A stretch of 63,804 nucleotides of DNA, the filler included, from Lenisia limosa (taxonomy: Eukaryota > Protista > Breviatea): NCBI GenBank assembly GCA_001655205.1. It is 6 parts of 6 records of this genome, joined end to end, with 100 filler letters (N's around TTAATTAATTAA, not from the genome) between each part and the next. Parts side by side here need not be neighbours in the genome. Positions count along the whole stretch, not along the records: positions 31,790 to 53,808 come from LPNZ01008244.1; 5 more parts are not named here. One strand, 5' to 3'. The notes under the pieces were generated by a model. That model did not search any database. It saw only the letters and a program-made list of their open reading frames with translations, and was not told the DNA's origin. The position numbers were made by a program, and so were the translations under genes. How positions within the stretch are numbered: the first letter of the stretch is position 1; every line of letters starts with the position of its first letter. This document shows positions 36,112 through 53,508 of the stretch, in pieces.

Positions 36112-36117
36112 TTAACC
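36112..36117. repeat. Left target-site duplication TTAACC
   Basis: Identical hexamer at 53503-53508 immediately outside the right TIR. Confidence 0.9.
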
Positions 36118-36156
36118 CATCATAAGCAGCTAACCCGAAAAAGGGGGGGGGGTTTT
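36118..36156 (+). repeat. Left terminal inverted repeat (39 bp)
   Basis: CATCATAAGCAGCTAACCCGAAAAAG10TTTT is the exact reverse complement of 53464-53502. Confidence 0.95.
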
Positions 36157-36749
36157 TTTAGTTTTCAAATTTTCACGTTTTTTCATTTTTGATCACACTC
36201 TATAAAATGGGGACAAAAAGCACCACAGTGAAGGAGTACACCGCCATATGTGTAGCAAGCACCCCAAAAAGCACCGTAAAGCAAAGCAAGGGAAATAATT
36301 CTTAACTTTTATATTTTCATTTTCGATCTCACTCTAACAAAGCACCCAAAAAGCACCATAACAAAACAAAAGCACAACAAAACTTCCTCAGCTAATCTCA
36401 CACTTCATAGTTTTATACGTTACATAACGCATTTTTGGTAAAAAGTATACTGAGACAACCACTTCTCTTGATACCGATTGGGCCTCCCTTGGAAAAGTTC
36501 AAAAAAAATATATATTTCTGTATATAAAATGCCCAGAACAATATCAGTAGTATATAACCAATCCAAAAAATCAGCTATATGAACACAATATTATTATTCC
36601 TATACAAAACATCCAGTTAGATATGGGGACCGCGCGGGGAAAAAAAAGTTTTCAAAAATCGTTGTTTTTTTATAGTAATCACTAATCAATGATCTGTATT
36701 ATTAAATATCTGGAATCACAAATGACAAAATATTTATATATTAAATCAA

Positions 36750-37322
36750 TTAGTATACTTTGTCTTGAGCATCGACAACCTGAGAACCATCAGTAGCAAA
36801 GGTGATTTTATACACTACAACCTTAGAGCCTTTAATAAAACACAACCCGACAGTGGCTTTTTTACTGCATAAAGCGTCTACAGAAAACAAATCCTTAAAT
36901 TCGTCGTATGAAAATTTTTTCAATAAATACCACAGCACTCCAGATTTTTTTGGACACAATTGGTCAACAGATTCATGATGAACTCTCATATAAGAATTAA
37001 TACTTTTGAGTAATTGACTTCTAACTTTCTTAGAATCATCACCAGTACTAACTTTCAAATGAATTTTAAGGAAATTTTTTTCAAATCCTTCGTTTTGTTT
37101 TAATTCTTCTATTAGTCCTTCTTTCGGTTTAACACCAAGAACTTCATCATCAGATACATCTTCATCATCAGATTCATCAGATTCATCAGATTCAACACAA
37201 TTTCTAAAATCTAAATGTAGGTAAAAATTTTTACCAATATGATTAGATAAGCTTAAAATAGTGCCATTTCTTTCCTCTTCCTCGCTTTCAACAATAGAAA
37301 CAACAGCATTAGATATATCCAT
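36750..37322 (-). CDS. Viral hypothetical protein (190 aa) with an acidic SDE repeat
   Basis: The ATG at 37322 (MDISNAVV, A-rich context) is preferred over the upstream start in the ORF track. Contains VESDESDESDDEDVSDDE. Confidence 0.7.
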   Translation of the reverse strand: MDISNAVVSIVESEEEERNGTILSLSNHIGKNFYLHLDFRNCVESDESDESDDEDVSDDEVLGVKPKEGLIEELKQNEGFEKNFLKIHLKVSTGDDSKKVRSQLLKSINSYMRVHHESVDQLCPKKSGVLWYLLKKFSYDEFKDLFSVDALCSKKATVGLCFIKGSKVVVYKITFATDGSQVVDAQDKVY

Positions 37323-37729
37323 ATTTGTTAACCGATAAAAAAACAAACAAAAAAAAACACATAAAAATTCATTCCAATACCTCTTTTTCACTTAGTTTGA
37401 AGCTACAGTTAGAATTTTCAAAAATAGAAATTTTTGTTGAAAAACGGGGCTTAGCCACTAAAACCAGCCAATTCTGACTCATATAATATATGTATAATAG
37501 TATCACTAAACAGTTCCAGGGGGAAAGGGAAAAATCACTTTTTTTGATTTTTTTTTTGAAAAAGTTTTTGAAAAAAATGCAAAAAAGTTCAAAAAAAAAA
37601 AGAAGTTGAATTCATTAATTATTTATTGATTCTATGAAAGGGATTTTTGTTTAACAAAGAGTAACAGCTAGAAAAGAGTCAATAATGTTAAAACTAACTA
37701 TATTTTAAGTTAACGCAACCCCATGTATT

Positions 37730-38785
37730 TTAGATTTCTCGTATATTTCCACTTCGAGTCATTTTCGGAATATGCTGCCTCTGAACATTTTCCTTCTCAA
37801 TTACAGGCAAATAATCAATGTTTGTATGACCTGTATTAAGTAATAGATCCTCTTCATAGTAAAATTTATCATCAGTATCTCCCTTTTCGTAACCTTCACT
37901 TAAATAGTACTGCGTTGGATTTGTTTTTCCACGCTTTGTTGACTTATATATTATAAAGGTTTTTTCACTCCAGTTAGGAGAAACATGCCTGTCACGATCC
38001 ATTCTATTTCCAATAAATTTTCTCACTACATCCCCCACCTTTAATTTTCCTGGGGGTATATCTTTATATTCTTTCTTTTTTGGTTCTGCGTTGTGAAACT
38101 GAAGATTAACTGGTCTTTCATCAGTGGCACTGTGTACCTTGTGATTATACGCCCATACAGTATCCGCTAAATATGGTTGCCAGTCATAATTTACTCGCCC
38201 AGTGTTTAGTTCAATTTTTTTCATACGCTCATAAAACGGCAAACTAATTGTAGCATTGACACGCTCGACATAACTGTTTTCATTTTTCATATATGGCGTA
38301 TTAATTATCAAGTGACTTGGCCTTCCGTTAGGGCATCGTTTTGTTTTTAAATTATCTCTAAACAGTTTATTATCAAATTCTTTTCCTGCATCAGCCTGTA
38401 GTGCGGTTGGCCACTCCTTGCAGTCCGTTAGTATCATGTCTTCAAAGGCTGACCATACTTCCTGAGAGTTAGTTGACTTAATAGGCCGACTCATTAAATA
38501 TCTGCTTCTTACTATGAGGCAGTTTAGGCACAACACCTTCTTGGTACTTCGAGCACTAGCCAAGTAGAGAACATCAATCTGGTATCTATCATAATTGTTC
38601 TGGTACTGTGGGAAATGCACAAAGTTTTTAATTGGTCCCTTAGTCCTTTGGTAGATTTCATGTTCGCCTTGGTCCTTAACAAATGCCTCAACTTCAGCTT
38701 TCGTGTAGTCTAACCCTAATTCTTCAACAACATCGTAAAATCTTCCTGTGAATCCATACTTATTCCATGCTTCAATTAATTCCAT
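37730..38785 (-). CDS. Retroviral-like (rve) DDE integrase, Polinton type
   Basis: D71 (YQIDV), D132 (QADAGKEF), E174 (NSYVERVNATI), AYNHKVHS, and a C-terminal LKVGDVVR...PNWSEKTFII typical of Polinton integrases. Confidence 0.93.
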   Translation of the reverse strand: MELIEAWNKYGFTGRFYDVVEELGLDYTKAEVEAFVKDQGEHEIYQRTKGPIKNFVHFPQYQNNYDRYQIDVLYLASARSTKKVLCLNCLIVRSRYLMSRPIKSTNSQEVWSAFEDMILTDCKEWPTALQADAGKEFDNKLFRDNLKTKRCPNGRPSHLIINTPYMKNENSYVERVNATISLPFYERMKKIELNTGRVNYDWQPYLADTVWAYNHKVHSATDERPVNLQFHNAEPKKKEYKDIPPGKLKVGDVVRKFIGNRMDRDRHVSPNWSEKTFIIYKSTKRGKTNPTQYYLSEGYEKGDTDDKFYYEEDLLLNTGHTNIDYLPVIEKENVQRQHIPKMTRSGNIREI

Positions 38786-38815
38786 TTTAGTGAAACAAAA
38801 AAAATATTTTTTATT

Positions 38816-41800
38816 TTATGTTTTCAGGTTATCTCTAATTTTTTGGATCATTCTCTCTCTGCCCTCTTCAATTCCACACTTCTTATACAACACCTCAAGT
38901 ACCCTTGTGACATGCTTACTCTTACACCTCAGCATACATTTATTTTTGTTGTCAGAAATATTTATCTTGTTTAACAGTTCAGCCACCTCGTCAACAGCCT
39001 CGTATTCAATAATAGGAGCCTTAAACTTTTTTGCTTTAATGGCCATGCGTACATTCACACACTCCAAGTCATTTAAGTCTTTCATAATTTTTATGTACTT
39101 CTTTTCAAATACGTTTTCTACCATAGCAGCACTGAAGTAGTACACTCTACTTAAATAATGAATAGAGTGACAGTTTTCAAACTTCTTAAGCTTGGACTGC
39201 CTACCAGTCTTGTGAAACTGTAGTCTCTTCTCTAGTTTAAGTAAGTCTTCTTGACATGTGTCATCTAGTGATACACACTTACCTAAGTATTTCTTTAAGT
39301 CAATCGTGCTAGTAGTGTCTCCATACATATCGTTCTCATTTGAAACATACTTAGTGCTACCAACATAGCAAGAGATCTCATCTTCATCATTCATTTCGTA
39401 TATAAGGGCTACTCTAATTCTACGAGGCTTTAATTCAACCATCCCTTCATAGTTGTAAGGCTCAAAGACAATGTCTTTAACATTTTCGTAGTCAACAATA
39501 TTTACTTGGCTAATGTCTCTACACCTACTCAAGGCAACATAGAGTGCGTTTTTAGTGAAATATGGTTTCTTATTCCTTAACTCCACATGCACATTATAGT
39601 CACCTTCAATAGTACTACCTTGAACCTTGTGAGCTGTGATTGCGTAGGCCTTATCAAAGAACTCTGCAAACTCTGCTTCAGTTACCAATACGTTGTGGTC
39701 CAACTCCACTCGATCGTCTTGTACACCAGTGACAGTATAAATTTTCGAGTTCCAAATTTCTTTCTTACCTCTGTTAACCTTACCAATGTATTCTTCTCCC
39801 ACAATACTACCAGTGAAGCTGTTATTAATACTGTGCCTCAAACTATTGGTGTAGACAATATTTTTCTTGCACTTGGCCTTAGCTGTTGTATTGAACCCAG
39901 TGATATCACTCAGAGTAATAGTCTCACTTGCTGTAATCTTGTTCATAACTTCCAACGTACTGGGAGTATATCTGTTAGCATTTTCAATGTAGCTAAGTTT
40001 AATTAAATTTTTCATTTCTTGTTTCATCACATTATTATTCTCATAGTCATATGTCTGAACACTAACTGGAGGTAGTTGATTCATATCTCCAAACATAATC
40101 ATTCGTTTGTTCATATTCATAAGGCGACACATGGCGATCACACTTACACTACTGATTTCGTCAAGAAGAATTGTCTCGTAGTGGGCAACATTACTTTTGA
40201 AGAAGCTCTCAAGTGTATAGCTGTTATCACACCCTAGTTTCTTAAGGTTTTGAACAACGTAGTTAGTTGATGATACAACACAACAGTTCTCTGTCTCACC
40301 ATATACTTTGGTAAGCAGTGTTGTTTTACCACATCCAGCTCCGCCCAATACCATACAGTTTTCATTGTTACCAGGCAATTCAGTTACAATATTCCACTGA
40401 CTAAGTGTACATTCGATATCACGCCTTGGGTAGTCAGTACAAAGCAGTCTCTTCAAGTCCATAGGTTTATCCTTGTTGAGACGCAACCTATCTGAGTTCC
40501 TCGAAGCAAACCTCTCAAGTTTCTTGGAGCATTCTTCAAAGTAAATGGCGTCTGTTCTCACAGCTACTACCTCTTCGGGACATACATTAGCAATTTGAAT
40601 TAAGTTAATGAAGTTGGAATGGATAATTTGTCTGAAGATACTGCAGTTATCACTCACTTTACGCGACCTACTTGTGGATTTCACAAAATATAAGTCACCA
40701 ACCTTCTTCACCTTACTAAACATATTTTTCTCCATGAGGTCACGATACTCCAAGAAGTCAACCAAGTTACTGTCTGTACTGGTGTACGAGTTATTTGTTG
40801 CTGTATATTTTTTGTGAAGTGTACCAATGAAGCAGTTTGGCATATTTTTATTGTCCCCTAGTTCATACTTAATGTAGTCGAGCATTAACTTAAAGGTATC
40901 ACCCTTCAGGAATGAATAGGCTTGGATTCTCGCCGTAATTGCCAAGTCCAACTTAAGTGTCTTCAACACGTACTCAATAAAGATATAGTTATAAACTCCG
41001 GGCTTAAATGGAATATGGTTGATAGTGAATTGTTCAGCCACAAAGTACTCTCCACAAACAATATCGTCTGTTGGGTTGTATGTGTAAGGCTGGAAACTAT
41101 CCAAGTTGGTATATACTGGGAAATTATTTGTGTTGCTGTGTAAAATATTCCTATAGCACCTCTTCAAGTCAATTTCATAACATTCAGGTACAGGCATCTC
41201 TTCATCATCTTCATTATATTCTTGATCTGGAGTTTTTACTACACCAGTTATGGGACCAACAAAATTGTTATCAAAAATATTTCTTGTTCCCTCGTTATAG
41301 TACGACACAGGAATTTCACCCACCATACAGTCACACAATTTACGAGCCACTGATGAGTAGGTCATGTGATCGTCTCTAAACTGTTCGAAGGGAAACTTGG
41401 TCCTAATCTTTTTAGTATAGCTTAAGGGACACAGGCTAAACGAGTCAAGGCGTTCAATTAACATGGGACATTCTTTATTGGGATAAACCATTAGAGACAC
41501 TTCCATCCGTGAGTCAAAGTCCAAACTATTAATTTGAGTTCCTGTTGTTTCGTGAATAGCAGCAACAATTGGTTCAAGAGGATTTTTAATAATAATTCTT
41601 CTGTAACCTTTCGTGTAGTAGTCCATCATTTCCTTTTCAGAAAAGCCATAGACATCTTCACTACTGAGGTCCAGTGTTTTAGGGTTTAAGTCTTGAATTT
41701 CAATCATTCTGTCCTTGCCAGCCAGTGTGCGTATGTCGCCATTACCATACAATATTTGCTGAATAACGTCTACGTCAGTAATGAGGTCGACATGGTTGTT

Positions 41801-42976
41801 GTTCACATATATACAAATTACGTTGTCAGTTTTTTGGGACTTGTCATGTTTGTTGTACCGAACTAGTACCTTCTTGTCAGGTCCAACTACATAGGCCGTA
41901 ACACTCGGATACCTGTCAGTCCAAACATCTAGGTCCCCAATAGAATAATTACAGTCCTTACCAACAACCTTGTTGAAGTCATTAAAGAATTCAGGTTTAC
42001 TCATTGTTTTGAAGGGAGATCGGAACTTACACTTATCCCATAATATGGTAACTAAGCACTTGCCGTCCTCACTTGGAACATAGTAGTTTAAAAATTCCTG
42101 TTTCAAGACTTCTTGACCAATCAGTAAAGCATTAATATTGATTTTGTTAATGGGATGAATATTTAAAACTTCAATGAGTTCTACTTTGCCTCCACTATCA
42201 ATGAATCCATCCTCTCTGTCAAGTTCCTTCTGGACTGCAAACTGTAACTTAACGTTTTCAATCCCTGTATCCATGTCTTTTGGCACAAAGAATTGTTCTA
42301 CTGACTGCCATCTCGTCTTAGTGGTACCCAAACGATCTTCACCTCCGTCCTCTGGTTTAAATTCATAAAGCACAGTGACTCTGTAGAGATTATGGGTCTC
42401 AAACTTAGCTACATTATCAATGATTCTTGTTAATTCAGCAGGAGTAAACTTCTGGAGATTTACAACGCCTAAGGTATCATAGTTGTCCTCCAAAAGCTGT
42501 GTGATACGCGATAAGTCATTGGTTCTTACACCTCTGGTAGCTCCTAAGTTTTTAGTGTAATCACTCTTCTTAGTAGCAGCTCTAGTCTTACGCAGTTTAT
42601 CAACAGCATTCTTAACGTTCTTGACGGTTTTATTGTTCAAGACAATATTGTTATCCTTAGCGTATTGCTGGTACTTGTAGTCATTGGTTGTCTTATCAAT
42701 TGGATCAGCCCTAGCCCTTCTTGTACCCTTTAATATATTTGTAAAGTCAGGAGCAGTGTTAGCTCTCTGTTTTTGTTTCTCTTCAATAGCTTTCATTTGT
42801 TCCACTATAGCTAAATATTCTCTCTGACTAATCTTATGGCTAGTCGTATTGTTTGAATACTTGTTGTTATAGAGATCAATGTTGGCTTCTTTAATTTTGT
42901 TTTTTTTGTAGGCAGTTACTCCCTCAGAGGGGTCAATAACCTTTTTACCGTACCTGTGCAATTGGGTGTTTTTCAT
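38816..42976 (-). CDS. 1386-aa replication protein: OTU-like domain, derived family-B polymerase, SF1 helicase, GIY-YIG-like domain
   Basis: PolB motifs EIDLKRCY (D603), KNMPNCFIG and VRTDAIYF (D809). SF1 motifs GGAGCGKTT, LLDEIS, FGDMNQLPPV, AYAITAHKVQGST and LYVALSR. C-terminal IYE...CYVGST...RLQFH. N-terminal PSEDGKC (C307) and NNHVDL (H395). Confidence 0.85.
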   Translation of the reverse strand: MKNTQLHRYGKKVIDPSEGVTAYKKNKIKEANIDLYNNKYSNNTTSHKISQREYLAIVEQMKAIEEKQKQRANTAPDFTNILKGTRRARADPIDKTTNDYKYQQYAKDNNIVLNNKTVKNVKNAVDKLRKTRAATKKSDYTKNLGATRGVRTNDLSRITQLLEDNYDTLGVVNLQKFTPAELTRIIDNVAKFETHNLYRVTVLYEFKPEDGGEDRLGTTKTRWQSVEQFFVPKDMDTGIENVKLQFAVQKELDREDGFIDSGGKVELIEVLNIHPINKININALLIGQEVLKQEFLNYYVPSEDGKCLVTILWDKCKFRSPFKTMSKPEFFNDFNKVVGKDCNYSIGDLDVWTDRYPSVTAYVVGPDKKVLVRYNKHDKSQKTDNVICIYVNNNHVDLITDVDVIQQILYGNGDIRTLAGKDRMIEIQDLNPKTLDLSSEDVYGFSEKEMMDYYTKGYRRIIIKNPLEPIVAAIHETTGTQINSLDFDSRMEVSLMVYPNKECPMLIERLDSFSLCPLSYTKKIRTKFPFEQFRDDHMTYSSVARKLCDCMVGEIPVSYYNEGTRNIFDNNFVGPITGVVKTPDQEYNEDDEEMPVPECYEIDLKRCYRNILHSNTNNFPVYTNLDSFQPYTYNPTDDIVCGEYFVAEQFTINHIPFKPGVYNYIFIEYVLKTLKLDLAITARIQAYSFLKGDTFKLMLDYIKYELGDNKNMPNCFIGTLHKKYTATNNSYTSTDSNLVDFLEYRDLMEKNMFSKVKKVGDLYFVKSTSRSRKVSDNCSIFRQIIHSNFINLIQIANVCPEEVVAVRTDAIYFEECSKKLERFASRNSDRLRLNKDKPMDLKRLLCTDYPRRDIECTLSQWNIVTELPGNNENCMVLGGAGCGKTTLLTKVYGETENCCVVSSTNYVVQNLKKLGCDNSYTLESFFKSNVAHYETILLDEISSVSVIAMCRLMNMNKRMIMFGDMNQLPPVSVQTYDYENNNVMKQEMKNLIKLSYIENANRYTPSTLEVMNKITASETITLSDITGFNTTAKAKCKKNIVYTNSLRHSINNSFTGSIVGEEYIGKVNRGKKEIWNSKIYTVTGVQDDRVELDHNVLVTEAEFAEFFDKAYAITAHKVQGSTIEGDYNVHVELRNKKPYFTKNALYVALSRCRDISQVNIVDYENVKDIVFEPYNYEGMVELKPRRIRVALIYEMNDEDEISCYVGSTKYVSNENDMYGDTTSTIDLKKYLGKCVSLDDTCQEDLLKLEKRLQFHKTGRQSKLKKFENCHSIHYLSRVYYFSAAMVENVFEKKYIKIMKDLNDLECVNVRMAIKAKKFKAPIIEYEAVDEVAELLNKINISDNKNKCMLRCKSKHVTRVLEVLYKKCGIEEGRERMIQKIRDNLKT

Positions 42977-43029
42977 GTTGCTTCTAATTTATGGAAAAAA
43001 AAATAATTATTTTAGTTTTGAAAACAATG

Positions 43030-43356
43030 TCATTTTTTGCAACTAGCACAAAGCTTACATGGTCGACCATATTTCTTCTTAATTATTGTGTCACCGCACT
43101 TTGCACATTTGTTCAGTTTAGCGACTTCTTTGTCGTATACTTCTTGGCAGTCCTTGATGTTATGAAATTTTCGCATGTGTGTTTTATATGTTTCTTTTGT
43201 TTTATAGTCCTTATCACAAACGTGACAGGTGTATGGTTTTACCACTTGTGGTTTACATTTTCCTGTTTCAGCAGATTTAGCAGTGTGATAAAAGTACGCT
43301 GATCGAGAGAAGGGTTCGTTACAATCGGGGCAGTTTTTGTAAAATGGTTTTGTCAT
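43030..43356 (-). CDS. Small viral zinc-finger protein (C2H2 plus extra Cys pairs)
   Basis: CPDC...H, CHVCDKDYKTKETYKTHMRKFH (canonical C2H2), CAKC and CKLC. Confidence 0.8.
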   Translation of the reverse strand: MTKPFYKNCPDCNEPFSRSAYFYHTAKSAETGKCKPQVVKPYTCHVCDKDYKTKETYKTHMRKFHNIKDCQEVYDKEVAKLNKCAKCGDTIIKKKYGRPCKLCASCKK

Positions 43357-43453
43357 GCTTTTAAGATTTTTTAATTTTAAAAAATGATATTTTAAAAATA
43401 TATTTTTTTCGGAACTTATTTTTTAAATATATTTTGTATAAAAAACAGAAGAC

Positions 43454-43912
43454 ATGTCATTCCTAGACTTCGTAAAGAACGGTAGTGCCGCTACTACTAC
43501 CACCAATGCTACTAAAATCCCAAATTATGAGGATTGCGTTAAACCTAATGAAACATACTGCTTGCACAACTACACCAAAACTAAGAACAGTAATGGAAAT
43601 TATTATATGATCTTAAATTATTCCAAGGACGGTATTAAAGACAATGCTGAAGCTATGTTCGCTCATCCCTGTATGTTCAGAGAAGTAACTGCAGCATTTA
43701 AACATAAATCAACTGCCTTAGAAGAGAATTATAAAAATGCCTTTGTGTACTTCAAGTATATTGGTAAAACAAAGAAACTACTTAAGTATGTTATCAGATG
43801 TGAAAAGGGTGAACAATGTGCTCCGAGTTTTGGACTAGTCGATGTCGGAGATAGTGATAGTGATAGTGATGAACAACCCGAATATACTAAGTGTAGCGAT
43901 AGTGATGATTAA
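43454..43912 (+). CDS. Viral hypothetical protein, candidate ssDNA-binding protein
   Basis: Intact ORF with an A-rich start. Tyr/Phe/Lys-rich strand-like core and a strongly acidic tail (DSDSDSDEQPEYTKCSDSDD). The function is inferred. Confidence 0.6.
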   Translation: MSFLDFVKNGSAATTTTNATKIPNYEDCVKPNETYCLHNYTKTKNSNGNYYMILNYSKDGIKDNAEAMFAHPCMFREVTAAFKHKSTALEENYKNAFVYFKYIGKTKKLLKYVIRCEKGEQCAPSFGLVDVGDSDSDSDEQPEYTKCSDSDD

Positions 43913-43983
43913 ATAAAAAAATATTTTTTTTGGACTCCACTAAAGTTGTTTTGGTATATGCCAATAAAAAAAAATTTTTTTTT

Positions 43984-44388
43984 TTACATAAATCTTTCAG
44001 GTTTGATATACCGAATATTCTTTTTTAAGTAACGATCGCACTGCTTAAGCATACCAGTTACATCTTTGCCATGTATAAACTCGTCATAGTTATTAGTTCT
44101 AGCACTACACTTACCATAGCTACACAGGTCCCAAGACAGATCCCAGAGGTTAATGCAATCACCCTTCCATAAATCCATTTGGGCCATAATTTCTTTCATT
44201 GAAAAATAATTATTGGACTGCCTACAAAACATGCTAGCAGTTTCATCTGAGTGTAGTACTCTCTTATTAAGGTATGCTCCAAAATTTACCAGGAAGCCTT
44301 CAGTGTCTTCAAGTAATGCACATGTGTGTCTACGGATAAAATCCATATCTCTTATGTTGTCAATATTAAAATTACAATCGTTCGACAT
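43984..44388 (-). CDS. Viral hypothetical protein (134 aa)
   Basis: Intact ORF between intergenic palindromes, starting in an A-rich (AAGAAGATG) context. No motif recognised. Confidence 0.65.
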   Translation of the reverse strand: MSNDCNFNIDNIRDMDFIRRHTCALLEDTEGFLVNFGAYLNKRVLHSDETASMFCRQSNNYFSMKEIMAQMDLWKGDCINLWDLSWDLCSYGKCSARTNNYDEFIHGKDVTGMLKQCDRYLKKNIRYIKPERFM

Positions 44389-44451
44389 CTTCTTTTTTTA
44401 TAGTTTAAAAAAATGATAAAAAATATTTTTTAAAAAAGTAACTTTTTTGGA

Positions 44452-45765
44452 CTACTCGATAAACTTGTTAATAGTCTCGATGTTGTGTTCAGGATTATCT
44501 TCCTCGAAGTACTGATACAGATTATAGTACGGTATGGTCTTCAGCATATTGTAAACTGCAATACAGTAGTAGCCACACAGTGCTGTGTCATCATTTTGTA
44601 TTTGAATATCATTTCGAATAATTTGTTTATCCGCAAAATTGTTGGTAATCAGTTCCTCATCAGCTATACTACCGAAACTATCAAAGTAGAACCACAGCTT
44701 ACTATTTAGCTTGTAAAGCAGTACCCAGTGTACACCACCAGTTGTGTCTATACCGTCTTTAGTCTTCTTCATGTTACCAGTATTAATGATTGCTCCCAGA
44801 GTATCTTTTTTGGCAAAGTATTCTTTAATACCTTTTTCATCACTCATAAAGGTTTTTATATTGTACTTCTCCTCTATCTCTCTGTTACTGAGTGCAGGTG
44901 CATCAATACCAATATCTGGTTCTATGTCTTCTTCTTCTTCTCCTTTGTTGCTGTAAATCTGTTCAACATCATATAACTCGTTACGTACTATTACGTCCTT
45001 GTCAGCTTTTAACCCTTGCTTCATTCGCGGTTCTAATAGAGAGCCAATTAGTTTCCAGTGACCAGCTCTAACACGTGTGTGCTTAATCCTGTCTTGAGGG
45101 AAAAAGGCAATACATGGCTTGTCCTCCTCGTTATCAAAGGCATTGATGATTTCATTTCCAAACTTCACACTACGAACTCTACTCAGCCCCATGTTTTCTC
45201 CGATGAAGGTTGCAACCGCTATTTGGCTGTCATTCATGTGTCCAAACGAATAGAACGCCTTGGCATTTTCCTTGATTTCATTGAAGTCCATTCTACCATT
45301 CTTCCACTTGTGTACCACAATGGTTGGACTGATATTGAAGTGCCTGCCACTCGTGAACAAGGGAGAGATTTGTTTTATAACATCCTTGTGTACTATGTCA
45401 TCAAATATAACTTCATAGCTGATTTCATCTGGATGGTCTTTAGCTGCATCTGCTGCTTTTTTCTTAATAAACTCATAGTCTATACTTGTTGAGCTTAAGT
45501 CAATGATGTCTAATTTAATATTTCTTTCGGTTGCTAGTTCATCCAGTGTTTTTAATATGGGTTGGTCAGTTGAGGTCGTATATACCAAGTACCCTGTAGA
45601 CTTCCTGTCTTGAAGAACGTCAAATACTAAATGAAAAGTTTTTCCACTACCTGTTCCTCCAATCATAACTGTACCGAAACAGCCATCTGGAGTAAATTTA
45701 GAGCGATGGACTTTTTGGACTTTGTTTTGATCGTCCAATAATACTTGCTTTTTAGAAATTGTCAT
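44452..45765 (-). CDS. A32/FtsK-HerA packaging ATPase fused to an adenain-type cysteine maturation protease
   Basis: Walker A GGTGSGKT (K42), Walker B VIFDD and LFTSGRHFNIS. Protease GVHWV (H346), FYFDSFG (D362) and QNDDTALCGYYC (Q390/C397). Confidence 0.9.
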   Translation of the reverse strand: MTISKKQVLLDDQNKVQKVHRSKFTPDGCFGTVMIGGTGSGKTFHLVFDVLQDRKSTGYLVYTTSTDQPILKTLDELATERNIKLDIIDLSSTSIDYEFIKKKAADAAKDHPDEISYEVIFDDIVHKDVIKQISPLFTSGRHFNISPTIVVHKWKNGRMDFNEIKENAKAFYSFGHMNDSQIAVATFIGENMGLSRVRSVKFGNEIINAFDNEEDKPCIAFFPQDRIKHTRVRAGHWKLIGSLLEPRMKQGLKADKDVIVRNELYDVEQIYSNKGEEEEDIEPDIGIDAPALSNREIEEKYNIKTFMSDEKGIKEYFAKKDTLGAIINTGNMKKTKDGIDTTGGVHWVLLYKLNSKLWFYFDSFGSIADEELITNNFADKQIIRNDIQIQNDDTALCGYYCIAVYNMLKTIPYYNLYQYFEEDNPEHNIETINKFIE

Positions 45766-45812
45766 TTTGTAGAAAATAATTTTATAAATATAATTTACAA
45801 AAAGAGTAAAAA

Positions 45813-47573
45813 ATGAAATCAGACCCAGAGAAGGAAAAATCTCGTGCGTTGAAAATACGAGAGCTCAACCAACTATTAGGGTTAGAGTACGCTTACCGTG
45901 ATGAAAGGTACGCCAGTGTTCTCGATGAAAATGGGAATATAAATAAGACTGCCACCAATGCTGTTGCAAAAGTACATAATAATGCAGCTAAAGCTAAAGC
46001 TGAAATTATAAAGGATGAAAACTTTAAGTATAACTCAGCGATGGAACAAAACAAGGCCATACGTGAGGACGTTGAAGATATTAAGGATATACTTGCTGAA
46101 AAACAATCTCAAAAAAAGTCTGTGGTGACAAGTGCATCGGGACCTGAATCTGAACCCGAACCTAAAAGAAAATATCAAAATAAACCCATGGCTCGCATAG
46201 TTGACATGAGTAATAAACCACGTAAACAAGGTGTGAACAAAACTAGCAGTAATCTGGAACCCATGATGTATAATAGTAGAAATGTCGTAAAGAAGACCAC
46301 CAAACCGAACTATGACGGCAAAGAGTTTAACTCTGCCGAAGATGCAGTTCTCCAGTTTATGGAATTTAAGAACAGTAAATCAAAGTATGATGGGTGGAGA
46401 CGAACACCTCCCGGTAAACTTACCAAGGACAACCCGTATATTTCCTTTAAGGTTAAAAACGAATATGCAGATTTTACTCCAAACGAATTTAATGAAGTAA
46501 AGCAGTACATACAGAAAATTAGAAACATTCACACGAATCACTTTGGTATGTGGCTCTTCCAAATTATTAAATATGATAAGGATGTTATTTCAAGTGAGGA
46601 CTTAAAAAGAGATTATCCAGACAATTACGAAGGTTGGGGACGTACTGAAGAAGAGTTTGCAGAGGCCCAGAGCAGGGAATGGGTGGAGAGGACGTTTGAG
46701 AAAGCTAGGAAGAGAAGAGAATTGGAAGCTAAGGAACAAGATGAAGCGTTCGCACAATTTGAAAAGGACAATGTCGACCCAACATGGTCACCTGAGGGGG
46801 AGGAGTACAATGGTAGACAACAGGAAGCTACAATGGATCGCCTCCAAATGAATAAACTTGATATTGTGTTATTAGGCAGTACTATTGCCAAAAAGATAAG
46901 CGAAGTTGTCGACCTAATTGACATAACACCTCGAGACTTCTTCTACATTATCTGGGAGTCTAGACAAGATGTAAATCCTGAAGGACGTAAAGCTTTGGAA
47001 GCTTTTATTGCTTCAACTGATGAAATAGAAGGTGCAGGTAAAAAACAAAAAAATAGACGTGGTAAAAGTCACAACTCTATGTGTATTTATCAGGATGGTA
47101 CACTTGGAAAACTTAAGTTTAATATGGGTGAACTACTCTTTAATAACTTTGCTAGTTGTACTGACCAGGACGGTAACGTTGTGTTGAATGAGGCAGTAAG
47201 TCCGCACATTACCGGGTTCTTAACAACAATGCATAGTACTAAGTACAAAGATATCAGCAAGGAAGATAGAGATCAGATTAGGAAAATTGTTGTTAAAGCT
47301 GATATTATTCCGAATAAAAATAATTCAAAGTTTAAACTAATTGCTGAGGATCACGAACCTTTGTTGATTCCAAAGAAGGCTACTAAAAAGTTCCTGAAAG
47401 AAAAGTTTAATGAACTCGTTGGAATTTATGCACAAGGTAATGGCGAACCTGGTAGTAACATCCATGATAACTTGCTCCGGATTATTAAGGAGTTAGAAGA
47501 GAGAGACACTAAACCTAGTGAAATTACTATGATGAAGAGAAAGATGATGGGCGGACAGAGATTCTTCTTCTGA
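45813..47573 (+). CDS. Viral 586-aa protein, candidate core/virion protein
   Basis: Long intact charged ORF with adenain-consensus sites IEGA|G and MMGG|Q. The C-terminal ELVGIYAQGN...IIKEL helix is reminiscent of conserved uncharacterised Polinton proteins. Confidence 0.7.
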   Translation: MKSDPEKEKSRALKIRELNQLLGLEYAYRDERYASVLDENGNINKTATNAVAKVHNNAAKAKAEIIKDENFKYNSAMEQNKAIREDVEDIKDILAEKQSQKKSVVTSASGPESEPEPKRKYQNKPMARIVDMSNKPRKQGVNKTSSNLEPMMYNSRNVVKKTTKPNYDGKEFNSAEDAVLQFMEFKNSKSKYDGWRRTPPGKLTKDNPYISFKVKNEYADFTPNEFNEVKQYIQKIRNIHTNHFGMWLFQIIKYDKDVISSEDLKRDYPDNYEGWGRTEEEFAEAQSREWVERTFEKARKRRELEAKEQDEAFAQFEKDNVDPTWSPEGEEYNGRQQEATMDRLQMNKLDIVLLGSTIAKKISEVVDLIDITPRDFFYIIWESRQDVNPEGRKALEAFIASTDEIEGAGKKQKNRRGKSHNSMCIYQDGTLGKLKFNMGELLFNNFASCTDQDGNVVLNEAVSPHITGFLTTMHSTKYKDISKEDRDQIRKIVVKADIIPNKNNSKFKLIAEDHEPLLIPKKATKKFLKEKFNELVGIYAQGNGEPGSNIHDNLLRIIKELEERDTKPSEITMMKRKMMGGQRFFF

Positions 47574-47575
47574 TA

Positions 47576-47593
47576 AAAAAAAATATTTTTTTT
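47576..47593. terminator. A8-TA-T8 palindrome between convergent viral stop codons, representative of an element-wide motif
   Basis: Perfect 18-bp palindrome filling most of a 22-bp gap between convergent genes. Similar palindromes occur in most viral spacers. The terminator role is inferred. Confidence 0.5.
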
Positions 47594-47595
47594 AT

Positions 47596-48306
47596 TTAGA
47601 CCTTCGTAGTATACAGCTCCTCATAGAAAGGAACGTGAGGAAACATTCTATGTCTACCATAGCCCTCCTTTCGTTTGCTGTAAGGCAAGGATGAAAGTCC
47701 TCCTTTTTTGTTGTAAGGTAGTGTTGAAAGTCCACCATTAAATTTACCTTTGCCGTATTTATCATAGGCATAGTCAGCAGCTTTAGTAGCTACATAAGAA
47801 GCAGCAAAGGCCGCAACTGGACCGAAGCCACCTTGTTTGTAATAGTCACCACTACCCATATCGACATCATCACCATCATCGCCCATACTTTCCTGTGCTT
47901 TGTCCTTGTAGTACTTAACTTCATCCTTAAGTGAGTCGATTTGATCAACATAACCGGCTACTTCTTTTGCTATAGCAGCTGGGTCACTCTTAACTCGCTC
48001 TACAAAGTCTGCAACAGTGTCTTCAAATGTGTCAACATTTTGTTCAATTTTATCTGCATATTTTAGTCCTTTTTCAATTGATGCAGCAAAAGGAACTTCT
48101 TCTTTAATTGTGTCAACAACCTCACTTGCTATTGGGTTCTTACGTACTTCCTTACTAATTTTGCGTCCGGTATTCGCAGCCTGTTTTACAGTGCTCCTTG
48201 CCTTCTTCGCGGTTTTCTTTAGTTTCTTGAACAAACCCTCTCCCTCATATTCGTAGTTGAAATCATCATCGCTGAAATCATCATCCTCTGGTTCAAAAAA
48301 TGACAT
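47596..48306 (-). CDS. Viral 236-aa protein, candidate protease-matured membrane-penetration or core protein
   Basis: Acidic leader (aa 1-23), then EGE|GLFKKLKKTAKKARSTVKQAA (basic amphipathic helix). Several GG and GxG sites at the C-terminus. Confidence 0.7.
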   Translation of the reverse strand: MSFFEPEDDDFSDDDFNYEYEGEGLFKKLKKTAKKARSTVKQAANTGRKISKEVRKNPIASEVVDTIKEEVPFAASIEKGLKYADKIEQNVDTFEDTVADFVERVKSDPAAIAKEVAGYVDQIDSLKDEVKYYKDKAQESMGDDGDDVDMGSGDYYKQGGFGPVAAFAASYVATKAADYAYDKYGKGKFNGGLSTLPYNKKGGLSSLPYSKRKEGYGRHRMFPHVPFYEELYTTKV

Positions 48307-48380
48307 TGTTTTCGAAATATTATACTCTTTTTGAAAAAATATATTATTTTAAATTATTTTAAAAAAGAACCAAATTAAAA

Positions 48381-49808
48381 ATGTCAACGAACTTTATTGA
48401 ATCCATGTTGCGTGTCGATGACAAGAGCCATGATATTACGGTCGAAAGTGTTATTGACCACCAAATAGAAAATACTACTTCACAAAATGAACCAACTGTA
48501 ACTTTTAAGTTAAGTACAGACGCGTCTTCATTCATTGAAACAAGTACTCTCTCTATTTATTGGAGAGAAAAATTAGAACTAGCAAATGGAGGCGTTTATA
48601 ATCTTGCAGCTACTACTGCTGTTGACGATACTGCTGAAGCTATATCTGGAAAACAATCCTTCGTCTATGCTAATTCTTATCACCAAATTAAGTCAATTAA
48701 AATATACAGTAATGGAACAGATATCTTACCTCCTGTTGATAATTCTACTGCAGGGATTATAGCGGATAACTATATGGATAAATATTACACTAATGACTAC
48801 TTGGATACAACTGGCCTTACTGAATTTGTTTTCAATCCAAGAAGTGAGAACACTGCTGCTCTCGGTAAAGCCGTTTATATTGGTGGTAATTATGTTGAGC
48901 GTGAAATTTTGCTTCCAGTGTTGTTCCCATTTATGAAGACTAATCCCGTTTTACCTCCCTCTTCGTCATATATGTTTGAGATTACTTTCAGAGACTCTTC
49001 AGAAAGTATTTGTAAAACCAGTGATGCTGCACTTCCTGTAAAGATAGACCGTGAAAAGGTTGTGCTAAAGAATCGTAAAATTAAATTGTCAGATAAAGGC
49101 AGAGCAGCTTACTTGCAAGGACTTTCCATTATTGACGATAAAATTGTACACACATACCTTCATCAAAGGATTTCAAATCCTGTACAAATAGGGTCAGCTA
49201 AGGTTACTGAGACTAGTACTTGTAATGTTGACAATCTCGCAACAGCGATAGACACTAAGGTTATTGATTGGGGTGCTTCTAGGGCAACTGGAACCTATGT
49301 GACAAGAAGGCTGAAAAGTCATCAGGTTGACATTGGTATTGATACATTTCCTAGGAATGGATATGAGAACAAGCTTGCCACCAATGATGTATTCAATTCT
49401 TATGTCCGTTATAGACGTGCGTGTATGAATTCAAGCGCTACACACAAAGATGTAGTGTTAACTATTAAGGACTTTAAAAATGCAAACGGAAAATGGCTCG
49501 ACTGTATTGACGTGTTACCAGACCGGATTCATCGCCAATTTCTGACAACTACCAATAATCAAGTTATTGATAAAATTGAGTTAGAAAATGCACCTGGGAA
49601 TTCTAATACTTATTTGTACACTTGTACGTTTGGTGATGCTGTCCTACTGTATGATGGAAAGCAAAGTGGAAATTTTAAAACTATTTATACCAAAACTCCA
49701 CTGGAAAACAATCCAAAATTGGATGTTAAGAAAACTATGCGCCAAAACAAAGCAGCAATGAAAGCAAGGAATGCTAACCCTAATGCTGAAACAGAAATTG
49801 AGAGCTAA
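48381..49808 (+). CDS. Major capsid protein (double jelly-roll, Polinton-like)
   Basis: 475 aa and beta-rich. VTFKL...FIETSTLSIYWREKL, HQIKSIKIYSNGTDI and LLPVLFPFMKTNPVLPPSSSYMFEITF follow the Polinton MCP pattern. It lies in the structural module near penton and fibre. Confidence 0.75.
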   Translation: MSTNFIESMLRVDDKSHDITVESVIDHQIENTTSQNEPTVTFKLSTDASSFIETSTLSIYWREKLELANGGVYNLAATTAVDDTAEAISGKQSFVYANSYHQIKSIKIYSNGTDILPPVDNSTAGIIADNYMDKYYTNDYLDTTGLTEFVFNPRSENTAALGKAVYIGGNYVEREILLPVLFPFMKTNPVLPPSSSYMFEITFRDSSESICKTSDAALPVKIDREKVVLKNRKIKLSDKGRAAYLQGLSIIDDKIVHTYLHQRISNPVQIGSAKVTETSTCNVDNLATAIDTKVIDWGASRATGTYVTRRLKSHQVDIGIDTFPRNGYENKLATNDVFNSYVRYRRACMNSSATHKDVVLTIKDFKNANGKWLDCIDVLPDRIHRQFLTTTNNQVIDKIELENAPGNSNTYLYTCTFGDAVLLYDGKQSGNFKTIYTKTPLENNPKLDVKKTMRQNKAAMKARNANPNAETEIES

Positions 49809-49858
49809 ATAATAAATTATTAAAAATTTAAAAAATATTTTTTTTTATATTTAAAAAA

Positions 49859-50506
49859 ATGTCATATCCGAAAATACCAATTCAAGATAATCCATACCTA
49901 CCTTCTGCACCACCACTTACAAAATCCGCATCTATCTTACTTAAATGTGGGTGTAGTGTAGCATATGAAGATAGAAAAAAACCATGCATTAAACACAACG
50001 ACAAAAAGAAGTTGATTGAACTTACACTAGATGAGGAACGTGGTGCAGAAAAAATTGTTCCTGATGAGTTAATCAAATATAACGAATTTAAGGCTTGTGC
50101 CCGAAAATATTTTAATGTTAAGGACATCTACAATTCCGAAAGCGACAAGGTTGAGGTGTTCATCATCCAGAAAAATAAATTTGTAAAGAGAAAGAGTAAC
50201 TGGATAAAAATTGATGAAAATAAAATCCAGGAATACACCAGTTATATGGTTAGTGAACAAGGGACTACGGATATGGAGTTGTGTGTAAAACAACACGGTA
50301 AGGCTGTCAAGGTTCTAACTAACAAAGAGTACAGAGAAGGGTTGCGCAAGCAGAATGGGCAACTTAATATTTCAAGTATCTATAAAAAAATAACAAAACG
50401 AGGTCTCCTCATTGGAACAGGCACAGTTATAGCGTTTTTTCTTAACCCTGTCCTTGGGGCTTTCACTGCCTTTTCTGGGGGTGTCTATGAAAATACAAAA
50501 AAATAA
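49859..50506 (+). CDS. Viral 215-aa protein with an N-terminal PSAP motif and a C-terminal hydrophobic segment
   Basis: MSYPKI...YLPSAPPL at the N-terminus and LLIGTGTVIAFFLNPVLGAFTAFSGGVY at the C-terminus. Confidence 0.7.
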   Translation: MSYPKIPIQDNPYLPSAPPLTKSASILLKCGCSVAYEDRKKPCIKHNDKKKLIELTLDEERGAEKIVPDELIKYNEFKACARKYFNVKDIYNSESDKVEVFIIQKNKFVKRKSNWIKIDENKIQEYTSYMVSEQGTTDMELCVKQHGKAVKVLTNKEYREGLRKQNGQLNISSIYKKITKRGLLIGTGTVIAFFLNPVLGAFTAFSGGVYENTKK

Positions 50507-50550
50507 AGCAATTTAAACCTTTAAAAATATATTTTTTTTGAAATAAAACA

Positions 50551-51306
50551 ATGAGACAAATACAATTTACGTTCCAAGGTGCTGAAGGCGAAATTAATTT
50601 TAACCCCGCACTGAGAGTAGAAGAAAATTCAAGGATACGACTGAACTTACTAACTTTCCCAAATTACATATACAACATACATCCAGATAACAATGAAGTG
50701 TCAGTTACATACATGGGGACTACGTACACGCGTAACATTCCAACAGGAGTGTACTCAAACATGGCACTGATGAATGACACATTAAATACATTATTTTATC
50801 CTGAACTACCTGTTAACTGGGTAGTTATCGGTACTAATGGTTCATCTTACAAGGTAGGGTTTATGCTACTTGATGGAGTAACACTAGATCTGAAAAATTT
50901 AGGTAAATTCTTTGGGTTTTCTAATGGGGTATTGGTTGGAACTACAGAAATGACTTCATCAGTGGTTGATGGAGTACTAGTTAATGCAGTCACAAATAAA
51001 TTGTATACAGCCGATCAATTTCCAGACATGTCTAATGGAGTTGATGTAGTTTACATTCGGTGTAACCTGGTTAAAACCCAATTTAATAATGACAAGTACT
51101 CTGAAATATTGGAAATTATGCCATTCACTGGTAACACAGGAGATTTGATAAGCTATACACAAGAAAACCTCAGTAACGTTGCAAAACCGATGAAAACAAA
51201 TGTGGTGAATAGCGCTAAAATTAGTTTAGGTGATAAAGCTGGTAATTTACTCTACTTTGGAAGCGGATTAAACGACTACACAACTGTTGTATTAATTATA
51301 GAATAA
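50551..51306 (+). CDS. Minor capsid (penton) protein, single jelly-roll
   Basis: YNIHPDNNEV...IPTGVYS...LNTLF and VYIRCNLVKTQF...SEILEIMPF are characteristic of Polinton/PLV/virophage pentons. Confidence 0.85.
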   Translation: MRQIQFTFQGAEGEINFNPALRVEENSRIRLNLLTFPNYIYNIHPDNNEVSVTYMGTTYTRNIPTGVYSNMALMNDTLNTLFYPELPVNWVVIGTNGSSYKVGFMLLDGVTLDLKNLGKFFGFSNGVLVGTTEMTSSVVDGVLVNAVTNKLYTADQFPDMSNGVDVVYIRCNLVKTQFNNDKYSEILEIMPFTGNTGDLISYTQENLSNVAKPMKTNVVNSAKISLGDKAGNLLYFGSGLNDYTTVVLIIE

Positions 51307-51334
51307 ATAAAATATTTTTTTTTATATTAAAAAA

Positions 51335-53188
51335 ATGGAACTACCAAGTGGATGGATTACGAGTGGGTCAATAAAAAATGGGACCACTGCTTCTGGAGAG
51401 ACCGTATCTTCTGTAGCAGGACCTGCCGGGATTGGGTTTAATTTAGATGATGATTTAAACTTTGATATTGGTGGAAAGAAATTGGTGAACGTCGCTTTGC
51501 CTGAAAATGATGGTGACGTATGCACTAAAAAATACGTAACAGAAAAAATAATTGAAGACAATATATTAGACGCTACTGCCATACAGAACAGTGCCAACAC
51601 TATTGGTGCTCAAATTACAGCGTTAAACACTACACAAGCTGGAGTTTATGATGATAAAATTTTACCAGCATATAATCACTCAGTTGAGGAGCATTTTGAA
51701 CCGCAGTTATTTCAAGACCATCTCACTGCCCACTTTGCCGGAACATACTNNNNNNNNNNNNNNNNNNNNNNNNNNNNNNATTTAAAAGTAGAAGGTGACT
51801 TTGAAGCAACTGGTTTCAAAATTACTCAAAGCGATATAGTTTATAATAATAGAACGTGGGCAACCCAGTATAACAGTGATCCTGTTGACAACATTGTTTT
51901 CAATATGAAATCGCCAAATGTTTTCAATGTTAGAAGTATCTCATTAACTCTGGAAGCAAGTAAAATTTCTGATGGAAGTAGATGTGGCGCTGATGATGTA
52001 ACTGTTATCTTATCCATCAATAGTGTTGTTAAAGTTCAATTAAATAATTATAAGTTTACCTCATGGGGACTGAATACTATAGCAATAGCTGATGTGAACA
52101 ATCCCATTCAAATTAATGCTAATGATATTATACAAATTGAAATGATAAATAATTCTGCTGATAGAAAAATAGTAACTAAGTTTCAAGACAAAATTGACGC
52201 TGAATTTATTAGTTTGAACATGGATGGAGATTTATCAATCGAAAAAATGATTGAGCTCAGGCTTGTTGGAATTGAAATTGATACATCTACAATACTAGCC
52301 ACCGAATGGGATGAAGGTGAAGGAAGACATATTCTAAATGTAAGTGAACGATTAAAATTAGGTGCTTTTGATAACGTTGAAACTGAAATGAATACAATGA
52401 GTGACCGAATTGATAGTGTAGAACTTAATAATACCAATCAAGACATATTTATTGCTGATCATAGCACTCGGATTACTAATTTAGAAGCTGCAGGTGGTAC
52501 TGATTTAACACCGCTTGAAAACAGAATAACAACTGTTGAAGGAACTTCTAATACAAACAGTGGAACCATCACTAATATTAATTCAACCCTTGGAAACCAT
52601 ACAACTTCCATAACTGGTCTAAATACAACAGTAAATCCTTTTATGGGATACTTTAACACAATCAAAGAAAAATTTAACAAGATGTTAGAATTACATAGTG
52701 TAATAGGACATATGGCTGCTCAATTCCAAACTACAGGACCTGCTGCTATTCCTAATGGTCAATTAACTACACATATTCCTTTTGAAGCTGGTTCTAATAT
52801 ATCAGGTTATGTCGAGGGATTAACCAACGCTTCAACAGGGAAAATGTTAATATTAAAGGATTGTTTATTTCTTATTGAAGCAAACTTATACTTTGATAAT
52901 AGTTTAGACGTGTCTAACACAGGTAGTCTAAATCTTGCAATAGCAGTTAATGGTGAAAGTAATTGGATGCAAACCGTTAGGTCCCATGAAACAGCACCAA
53001 CTTTCACTATAAATAGTTCCAAATTAATGAACTTATATGCTAACGATGAAATTCAGTTAGTTATGGATCATAATAATCGAGATGGGTTGACACATGGTAA
53101 TAACACTTACTATACACATTCTTCATGGTCTTTGACTATTATCCAGCCTAAAGAAATGAATAGTTTATCACCCATATCAGACTATTAA
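51335..53188 (+). CDS. Fibre/spike protein with a coiled-coil stalk and C1q-like head; frame across the 30-N gap unverified
   Basis: Fibre collar motif KLVNVALPENDGDVCTKKYV, heptads (RIDSVE..RITNLE..RITTVE), and a C-terminal TGKMLILKDCLFLIEANLYF...IAVNG...SSKLMNLYANDEIQLVM. Confidence 0.7.
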   Translation: MELPSGWITSGSIKNGTTASGETVSSVAGPAGIGFNLDDDLNFDIGGKKLVNVALPENDGDVCTKKYVTEKIIEDNILDATAIQNSANTIGAQITALNTTQAGVYDDKILPAYNHSVEEHFEPQLFQDHLTAHFAGTYXXXXXXXXXXXLKVEGDFEATGFKITQSDIVYNNRTWATQYNSDPVDNIVFNMKSPNVFNVRSISLTLEASKISDGSRCGADDVTVILSINSVVKVQLNNYKFTSWGLNTIAIADVNNPIQINANDIIQIEMINNSADRKIVTKFQDKIDAEFISLNMDGDLSIEKMIELRLVGIEIDTSTILATEWDEGEGRHILNVSERLKLGAFDNVETEMNTMSDRIDSVELNNTNQDIFIADHSTRITNLEAAGGTDLTPLENRITTVEGTSNTNSGTITNINSTLGNHTTSITGLNTTVNPFMGYFNTIKEKFNKMLELHSVIGHMAAQFQTTGPAAIPNGQLTTHIPFEAGSNISGYVEGLTNASTGKMLILKDCLFLIEANLYFDNSLDVSNTGSLNLAIAVNGESNWMQTVRSHETAPTFTINSSKLMNLYANDEIQLVMDHNNRDGLTHGNNTYYTHSSWSLTIIQPKEMNSLSPISDY

Positions 53189-53463
53189 ATAAAGAATATA
53201 TTTTTTTTGAGTTACTATCAAAGGGGAGGCACCACGTTCTTTGTTTTGTCTTTTATATTATTGCTCTGTTGATGTTTGTTATAAGAGGTGATTTGAGGTA
53301 TTGGTATCCAACTTAAATCCTCATATAGTTCATGCTTGAGGTGTGTCTTTTTGTGTTGTCGCGTGCGTTTTGCGTTGTTCTGTGTAAGGAGAGGTGATTT
53401 TAATGGGATGTTGCATTGGCGTCCATTCTGAAAAAAAAAAGTTTTGAAAAAAAGTAATTATTT

Positions 53464-53502
53464 AAAACCCCCCCCCCTTTTTCGGGTTAGCTGCTTATGA
53501 TG
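53464..53502 (-). repeat. Right terminal inverted repeat (39 bp)
   Basis: AAAAC10TTTTTCGGGTTAGCTGCTTATGATG is the exact reverse complement of the left TIR. Confidence 0.95.
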
Positions 53503-53508
53503 TTAACC
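53503..53508. repeat. Right target-site duplication TTAACC
   Basis: Matches 36112-36117. Confidence 0.9.

Follow-up and report, generated by a model that had tools for sequence, protein, structure and literature searches.

The window, a stretch of 63,804 nucleotides in which six parts of the Lenisia limosa (Breviatea) assembly GCA_001655205.1 are joined end to end with filler between them, carries an integrated virus-like element in the part that comes from record LPNZ01008244.1 (positions 31,790 to 53,808). On the minus strand of this element, the domains of a packaging ATPase and of an adenain-like maturation protease lie in one open reading frame (ORF; Table 1). In the ORF listing of the window, this single frame opens with an ATG and runs through 437 codons to a stop, with no internal stop and no frameshift, and the gene is intact; its two alternative frames are closed by 30 and 52 stops, and, from the base composition of the element, 437 open codons would be expected by chance with a probability of only ~7e-15. 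An earlier note on this DNA had described one stop-free frame of 437 amino acids (aa) with K42, VIFDD, GRH, H346, D362, Q390 and C397, and both the frame, by the ORF listing and the closed alternatives, and every motif, at the residue given for it, were recovered. Contig NODE_320 of the European Nucleotide Archive (ENA) encodes the identical protein (P0001), and the window and this contig show no mismatch up to position 51750, fused gene included. Among the other ORFs of the element, neither domain profile found a second ATPase or protease, and thus no stand-alone copy can substitute for the fused ORF. The domain architecture is real and so far unreported, its parts being two well-known hallmark genes, and its features suggest that this is probably a single genuine gene translated as one two-domain morphogenesis protein, in which a packaging ATPase is followed by an acidic linker and an adenain-like protease.

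Table 1. Features of the fused gene and of the element around it, in window coordinates (TIR, terminal inverted repeat; TSD, target site duplication; pLDDT, predicted local distance difference test; SF1, superfamily 1)
Feature	Position	Strand	Basis
Fused ATPase-protease gene	44452-45765	-	ORF listing, motif check, identical protein P0001 on NODE_320
A32 / FtsK-HerA-type packaging ATPase domain, residues 1-246	45028-45765	-	Pfam, conserved motifs, profile and fold matches
Walker A GGTGSGKT with K42	45637-45660	-	
Walker B VIFDD, residues 119-123	45397-45411	-	
Gly-Arg-His (GRH), residues 140-142	45340-45348	-	
Acidic linker, residues 247-290 (~44)	44896-45027	-	low pLDDT, low conservation, charge
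Clan-CE adenain-like cysteine protease domain, residues 291-437	44455-44895	-	C5 scores, invariant residues, PDB profile, fold
His346 codon	44728-44730	-	
Asp362 codon	44680-44682	-	
Gln390 codon	44596-44598	-	
Cys397 codon	44575-44577	-	
Whole element, 17,385 bp	36118-53502	.	TIRs, TSD, G+C shift
Left TSD copy TTAACC, 6 bp	36112-36117	.	identical to right copy
Left TIR, 39 bp, includes G10 run	36118-36156	+	100% complementary to 53464-53502
351-aa DDE integrase, rve-like	37730-38785	-	Pfam rve E=4.8e-4, below cutoff; IS481-type DDE transposase E=2.9e-5 (weak)
1386-aa replication protein, SF1 helicase at residues ~859-1160	38816-42976	-	Viral_helicase1 E=2.6e-14, AAA_19, AAA_30, UvrD_C_2; RecD, TraA matches
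108-aa C2H2 zinc-finger protein, adjoins replication gene	43030-43356	-	zf-C2H2 E=2.9e-5
475-aa ORF, candidate major capsid protein, unconfirmed	48381-49808	+	size and synteny only
251-aa ORF, candidate minor capsid (penton) protein, unconfirmed	50551-51306	+	size and synteny only
617-aa ORF, possibly fibre-like	51335-53188	+	weak PHROG tail-fibre match E=1.1e-3
Right TIR, 39 bp, includes G10 homopolymer	53464-53502	-	perfect match to left TIR
Right TSD copy TTAACC, 6 bp	53503-53508	.	identical to left copy

A word-indexed protein search for homologues with the same two-domain architecture, a check suggested in the earlier note, found one further fused protein, P0002 (411 aa), which covers 98% of the query at 39% identity. 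It is encoded on another contig of the same assembly, ERZ3820729 (NODE_1472 versus NODE_320, with coverage of 34.2 and 35.8, respectively), and since the neighboring genes of the two contigs are syntenic at 26-45% protein identity, the contigs carry long-diverged elements and not copies of one; the element that encodes the paralogue is referred to below as the sister element, L001. Between the two fused proteins, identity is 41% in the ATPase, 52% in the protease and 16% in the linker, where P0002 has a 13-residue deletion that retains the frame, a pattern that an assembly error would not yield twice and that would be expected of a two-domain protein under purifying selection whose linker is free to vary. 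Evolutionarily, because both elements carry the same architecture, the fusion is older than their split. The paralogue also bears on an artefactual explanation of the gene, namely, that two neighboring genes were run together when a stop codon or frameshift between them was lost through faulty sequencing or assembly. The assembly is of a short-read, SPAdes-style kind, and a 69-nt difference between window and contig in another gene indicates that some regions are unstable; the same uninterrupted architecture, however, recurs on an independent contig at 39% protein identity and with an in-frame linker deletion, coverage is ~35x on both contigs, and the fused gene is identical in window and contig, so that we regard an artefact as extremely improbable.

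To place the architecture among other proteins, a profile of the two fused proteins was run exhaustively against 1.84 billion representative proteins (E<=1e-3). This search gave 878 matches, among which only P0001 and P0002 aligned end to end and all others matched one half; no third fusion was found among the proteins searched, and the stand-alone relatives were ATPases of ~230 aa and proteases of ~150 aa (median 153 aa). When both domain profiles were run against the 160 relatives retrieved, P0001 and P0002 were again the only proteins with both domains. Several candidates for cryptic fusions were ruled out because they have no ATPase domain, these being five longer proteins with a C-terminal protease (P0024, P0136, P0059, P0090 and P0057) and P0003, which begins in the region equivalent to the linker; P0017 and P0034 were likewise rejected as further ATPase fusions, their protease being joined to other modules. 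IMG/VR and JGI metagenome contigs scanned with the two-sequence alignment gave no further relatives, and around the closest stand-alone relatives, P0009, P0151 and P0004, no adjacent-gene intermediate was found, since neither Pfam nor hhalign nor a local profile search identified a neighboring gene as the partner domain. Full-text searching of the literature on Polintons, virophages, Polinton-like viruses (PLVs) and adenoviruses found no ATPase-protease fusion. The earlier note's premise that the two enzymes are normally separate genes is therefore supported both by the 878 relatives, two of them fused, and by the literature, which also gives separate genes in known Polintons, where the note had considered that the fusion might prove common.

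Two observations concern other proteins of composite build. The small protease domain is a promiscuous fusion partner in metagenomic proteins, being joined elsewhere to an L544-type nucleotidyltransferase (P0017, 781 aa), to a DNA methylase and a phospholipase A2 (P0034, 522 aa), to an unrelated N-terminus that precedes it (P0024, 412 aa), and to N-terminal or C-terminal regions without recognized identity (P0073, P0085, P0100 and P0124, 363-375 aa). In the BFVD database, the model of the fusion aligned over 399-489 columns, at high root-mean-square deviation (rmsd), with A0A141HRM0 (654 aa), A0A6G6XN95 (890 aa) and A0A3G4ZXM9 (1097 aa), which, on these model alignments, might be further two-domain proteins of giant viruses that combine a P-loop nucleoside triphosphatase with a CE protease.

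Functionally, the N-terminal half has the sequence of a complete A32/FtsK-HerA-type packaging ATPase, and DNA translocation is predicted for it. In a whole-protein scan, Pfam Pox_A32 (PF04665) matched residues 29-155 at 28.5 bits versus a cutoff of 22.8 (E=1.4e-6). When the fused protein and its paralogue were aligned with 13 of the stand-alone relatives recovered by the exhaustive search (15 sequences), G36, G41, K42, D122, D123 and R141 proved invariant, and Arg141, which follows Walker B, would be the arginine finger; the stand-alone ATPases (median 228 aa) stop at about residue 245 of the fused protein. Compared with the Protein Data Bank (PDB), the ATPase profile matched the B204 packaging ATPase of Sulfolobus turreted icosahedral virus (STIV) over residues 32-205, as well as HerA proteins. 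By fold, this half matched giant-virus A32-like ATPases, poxvirus OPG160, Sputnik V3, the packaging ATPase of a Yellowstone Lake virophage and adenovirus IVa2 in BFVD, and RecA/KaiC-type ring ATPases in the PDB.

The C-terminal half is a complete adenain-like cysteine protease of clan CE, with its catalytic residues intact and activity predicted from its sequence. No protease family was called in the whole-protein Pfam scan; the isolated domain matched Peptidase_C5 (E=5e-4 to 7e-4, 19.7-20.2 bits versus a cutoff of 21.3), followed by Peptidase_C48 and SidE_DUB, all three of which belong to clan CE. From the exhaustive search, 49 relatives were aligned, stand-alone proteins of ~150 aa that match the C-terminal half only, and N328, H346, D362, Q390, C397 and G398 are invariant in these 49 sequences, 33 of which match Peptidase_C5 individually (E<=0.01, best 7e-10). 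The protease profile matched adenain (1.4e-10), pS273R of African swine fever virus (ASFV; 1.5e-9) and SENP8 (6.9e-6) in the PDB, where H346/D362/Q390/C397 align with the catalytic residues of adenain chain 1avp_A (His, Glu, Gln and Cys, in that order). Structurally, the AlphaFold model is confident over this domain (pLDDT 80-96), and in a fold search of the PDB adenovirus proteases held ranks 1-5 and 8, and thus five of the top six, while the BFVD matches included Sputnik V9, ASFV S273R, an adintovirus adenain (TM 0.57, rmsd 2.9 A) and proteases of adenoviruses and giant viruses. Both domain calls of the earlier note are thus upheld, the ATPase by a Pox_A32 score above cutoff, invariant motifs, and packaging-ATPase matches by profile and fold, and the full protease triad by catalytic positions invariant in the 49 relatives and by adenain as the best PDB profile match.

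Clan CE, though, also includes SUMO and ubiquitin proteases, and SENP8, SENP1, ChlaDub, SseL and OtDUB are among the weaker matches, as would suit a Ulp1/deubiquitinase-type enzyme that acts on host or helper-virus proteins, next to an ATPase with a non-packaging role. That the same domain is joined in other viral proteins to unrelated modules (a nucleotidyltransferase; a methylase and a phospholipase), and that the capsid genes of the element are only candidates, also fits such an enzyme. However, the best profile and fold matches are to capsid-maturation enzymes (adenain, adintovirus adenain, Sputnik V9 and ASFV pS273R), the domain is as small as the proteases of virophages and PLVs (median 153 aa), and its partner domain passes the A32 packaging-ATPase model, so that we hold a deubiquitinase-type role to be improbable.

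Between the two domains, residues 247-278 of the linker are predicted to be disordered (pLDDT <50), and the linker as a whole has 13 Asp and Glu versus 6 Lys and Arg residues (net charge -7), in agreement with the acidic linker described in the earlier note. Its 44 codons contain no stop in frame and five in each of the other frames. Since stand-alone ATPases end before the linker and stand-alone proteases begin after it, the protein corresponds to two entire genes with a spacer in between. A family of stand-alone proteases from marine metagenomes (P0003 / P0151; 246 aa; loci L005-L008) has an N-terminal extension with a weak alignment, from residue 235 on, to the final helix of the ATPase and to the linker; the upstream neighbor in this family is not an ATPase, and the extension could be left over from an earlier fusion or simply be common to both proteins.

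From a gene-expression perspective, the element offers a marker of gene boundaries. The AT-only palindrome AAAAAATATTTTTT, allowing up to two mismatches, has a copy in nearly every intergenic spacer (positions including 38797, 43916, 44418, 47576, 49830 and 51307, in spacers across 38786-53200), occupies even a 22-nt spacer between convergent genes, and is found in L001 too, and it is likely to be a bidirectional transcript-boundary signal (3' end and/or promoter) common to both elements. In coding sequence it has one weak match, within the 1386-aa gene. A scan of both elements found no copy within the fused ORF or within the paralogue ORF of L001, matching the earlier note's remark that no A-rich spacer palindrome lies inside. 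This absence counts against the idea that two proteins are made without proteolysis, with the protease initiated at Met248 or Met307 or made from an internal transcript, and with a lost stop codon behind the apparent fusion. A methionine does stand at the start of the linker, at residue 248, but it is absent from the equivalent site of P0002, and Met307, which is conserved, lies inside the protease domain, past the start of the stand-alone relatives; moreover, the frame has been kept across linker indels in both lineages, which would be needless if the halves were expressed separately. With no internal palindrome, an unconserved Met248 and a Met307 within the domain, separate expression of the protease is without support, and we consider it very improbable.

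The closest precedents are pairs of separate genes. In mavirus, MV15 (an FtsK-like packaging ATPase) and MV16 (a C5-family cysteine protease) belong to the same two families and are numbered consecutively, ATPase then protease, and Sputnik V3 and V9, again of these families, are both among the fold matches of the one fused protein; in mavirus and Sputnik, however, the two are separate genes and polypeptides, whereas here they form one ORF with a 44-residue linker. Adenovirus provides the best solved-structure match by both profile and fold, adenain (AVP), with all four catalytic positions aligned, and its IVa2 is among the fold matches of the ATPase half, but the adenoviral ATPase and protease genes are likewise separate, and adenain has 204 aa versus ~147 aa here. 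Domain fusion as such recurs in virophages and PLVs, where PolA-S3H ('TVpol'), AEP-S3H, pPolB-S1H and GIY-YIG-Zn ribbon fusions have been reported; these are replication or nuclease modules only, and none was found in the literature within the morphogenetic module.

Most likely, the gene arose from an ATPase gene and a protease gene that lay side by side in one orientation and lost the spacer and stop codon separating them, a precursor-like arrangement being documented in mavirus (MV15, MV16), and the two lineages, now at ~40% identity, have retained the fusion. Since the protein is probably made as one chain, both activities would be produced in a fixed 1:1 ratio, and because ATPases of the same class act as oligomeric rings at the vertex, several copies of the protease may be brought to the DNA entry site of the capsid, so that proteolytic maturation could be coordinated with genome packaging in both space and time. 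DNA activates adenain, and, by analogy, the protease domain may also undergo DNA-dependent activation at the packaging site. Thus, we tentatively posit a protease that would stay tethered to the oligomeric packaging motor at a unique vertex, be switched on by the incoming DNA and process capsid or core precursors from there, which would make the fusion a functional innovation beyond a device of expression, a conjecture in which we place low confidence. Such vertex coupling of packaging to maturation is plausible, but the data agree just as well with a polyprotein that is cleaved post-translationally. The two enzymes would then be translated jointly for economy and equal dosage, and the protease would cut itself free in the linker, with no coupling at the vertex. 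Self-excision is common among viral proteases, the length, predicted disorder and poor conservation of the linker would suit an accessible cleavage region, and, measured against their stand-alone relatives, both domains are complete. Neither linker, though, contains a Gly-Gly or adenain-type Gly motif, a negative that gives a lead only, the patterns being short, degenerate cleavage-site patterns for adenain and Ulp1 proteases, and in both paralogues they match only the Walker A loop and a site just before the catalytic His. Self-excision from a polyprotein, the leading rival, is, in our estimate, possible but on the unlikely side.

Several points weigh against reading the gene as a single two-domain morphogenesis protein. 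It is a prediction from DNA sequence, and both known fusions come from one assembly, the lineage being very thinly sampled. The isolated protease domain scores slightly below the curated Pfam cutoff and falls outside strict C5 membership, and for this reason we file it at the level of clan CE and not of family C5. In the predicted model, the ATPase half reaches a pLDDT of 55-82, which is moderate only; the full-length alignment used for structure prediction misplaced the ATPase-only rows, so that two sequences supply most of the basis for this half, and the moderate confidence is explained in part by that misalignment; what the model informs is the fold of each single domain. Finally, no capsid gene was recognized by family scans, word-indexed searches, PDB profiles or hhalign against the large ORFs of related contigs, and the morphogenetic setting therefore rests on the two domains themselves.

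The element itself is complete and integrated, and its integration looks recent. Its 13 ORFs of >=100 aa are tightly packed with short spacers, with no broken gene seen, and G+C content falls from ~0.44 in the left flank to 0.31-0.38 inside, the change lying near 36,000. In the left flank (31790-36111) there is no ORF of >141 aa, no Pfam match and no Rfam family. The zinc-finger protein is 27% identical to a 109-aa gene product of L001 (10603-10932). Of the presumed structural genes, those at 45813-47573, 48381-49808, 49859-50506 and 50551-51306 have relatives detectable in the sister element only, and the morphogenetic module appears to be extremely divergent. The candidate major capsid protein is 32% identical to a 469-aa ORF of L001, with no other relatives in two word-indexed searches, no PDB profile match and an AlphaFold2 pLDDT of 36; the candidate penton protein is 45% identical to a 252-aa ORF of L001 and has no family or PDB match. 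In the possibly fibre-like gene, the window has 30 nt (51750-51779) versus 99 nt in NODE_320, an in-frame difference of 69 nt that yields 617 versus 640 aa; no tandem repeat was detected at these positions, and the rest of the compared sequence is identical.

Taxonomically, the element combines traits of two groups. With Polintons/Mavericks it has in common a length of 15-20 kb, TIRs, a 6-bp TSD such as DDE/rve integrases generate, an integrase of the rve type, an A32-like ATPase and an adenain-like protease, and its termini are of the Polinton type, the perfect TIRs and the TTAACC on both sides being unambiguous, though the rve match is weak; in contrast to Polintons, in which the literature gives the ATPase and protease as separate genes, it has them fused, and its TIRs are just 39 bp. 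Like the Tlr1 elements of Tetrahymena and the PLVs that encode pPolB-S1H, it is integrated in a eukaryotic genome and has an rve-type integrase, an SF1-helicase replication protein and an A32-like ATPase. Tlr1 and most PLVs, though, are described without a maturation protease, whereas this element has one, and the likeness to Tlr1 is one of described architecture. Tlr1-like pPolB-S1H is described as a replication protein of very large size that ends in an SF1 helicase (PMC5499653, PMC11161782), and, according to the literature, Tlr1-like helicases conceal a divergent pPolB palm domain; in our element, no Pfam match to a protein-primed polymerase was found, the 1386-aa protein giving SF1 helicase matches only. 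The Polintons named in the earlier note are thus an imprecise reference: the likeness covers the TIRs, TSD, integrase, ATPase and protease, but this is not a textbook Polinton, no protein-primed polymerase being detected by Pfam and the SF1 helicase being like those of Tlr1-like elements and PLVs.

The lineage of integrating virus-like elements in which the fusion is conserved is small, deeply divergent and poorly sampled, and the importance of the fusion is limited because there are two examples only, from one sample. Until now, packaging ATPase and maturation protease have always been treated as separate genes, and a conserved natural fusion of the two is a genetic "Rosetta-stone" argument that both enzymes act at the same place and time. 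It also places a protease in an element with replication genes of the Tlr1/PLV type, a class described without one, and it warns that presence tables built on one function per gene can miss a protease that follows the ATPase domain of an "ATPase" ORF. As a compact single polypeptide, the fused gene product lends itself to structural work on protease delivery to the capsid. If the tethered reading is true, packaging and maturation would be mechanically coupled in this lineage, a natural example of such coupling among small DNA viruses of eukaryotes, and the lineage would also offer a view of how protease delivery into capsids evolved in the assemblage of adenoviruses, virophages and Polintons.

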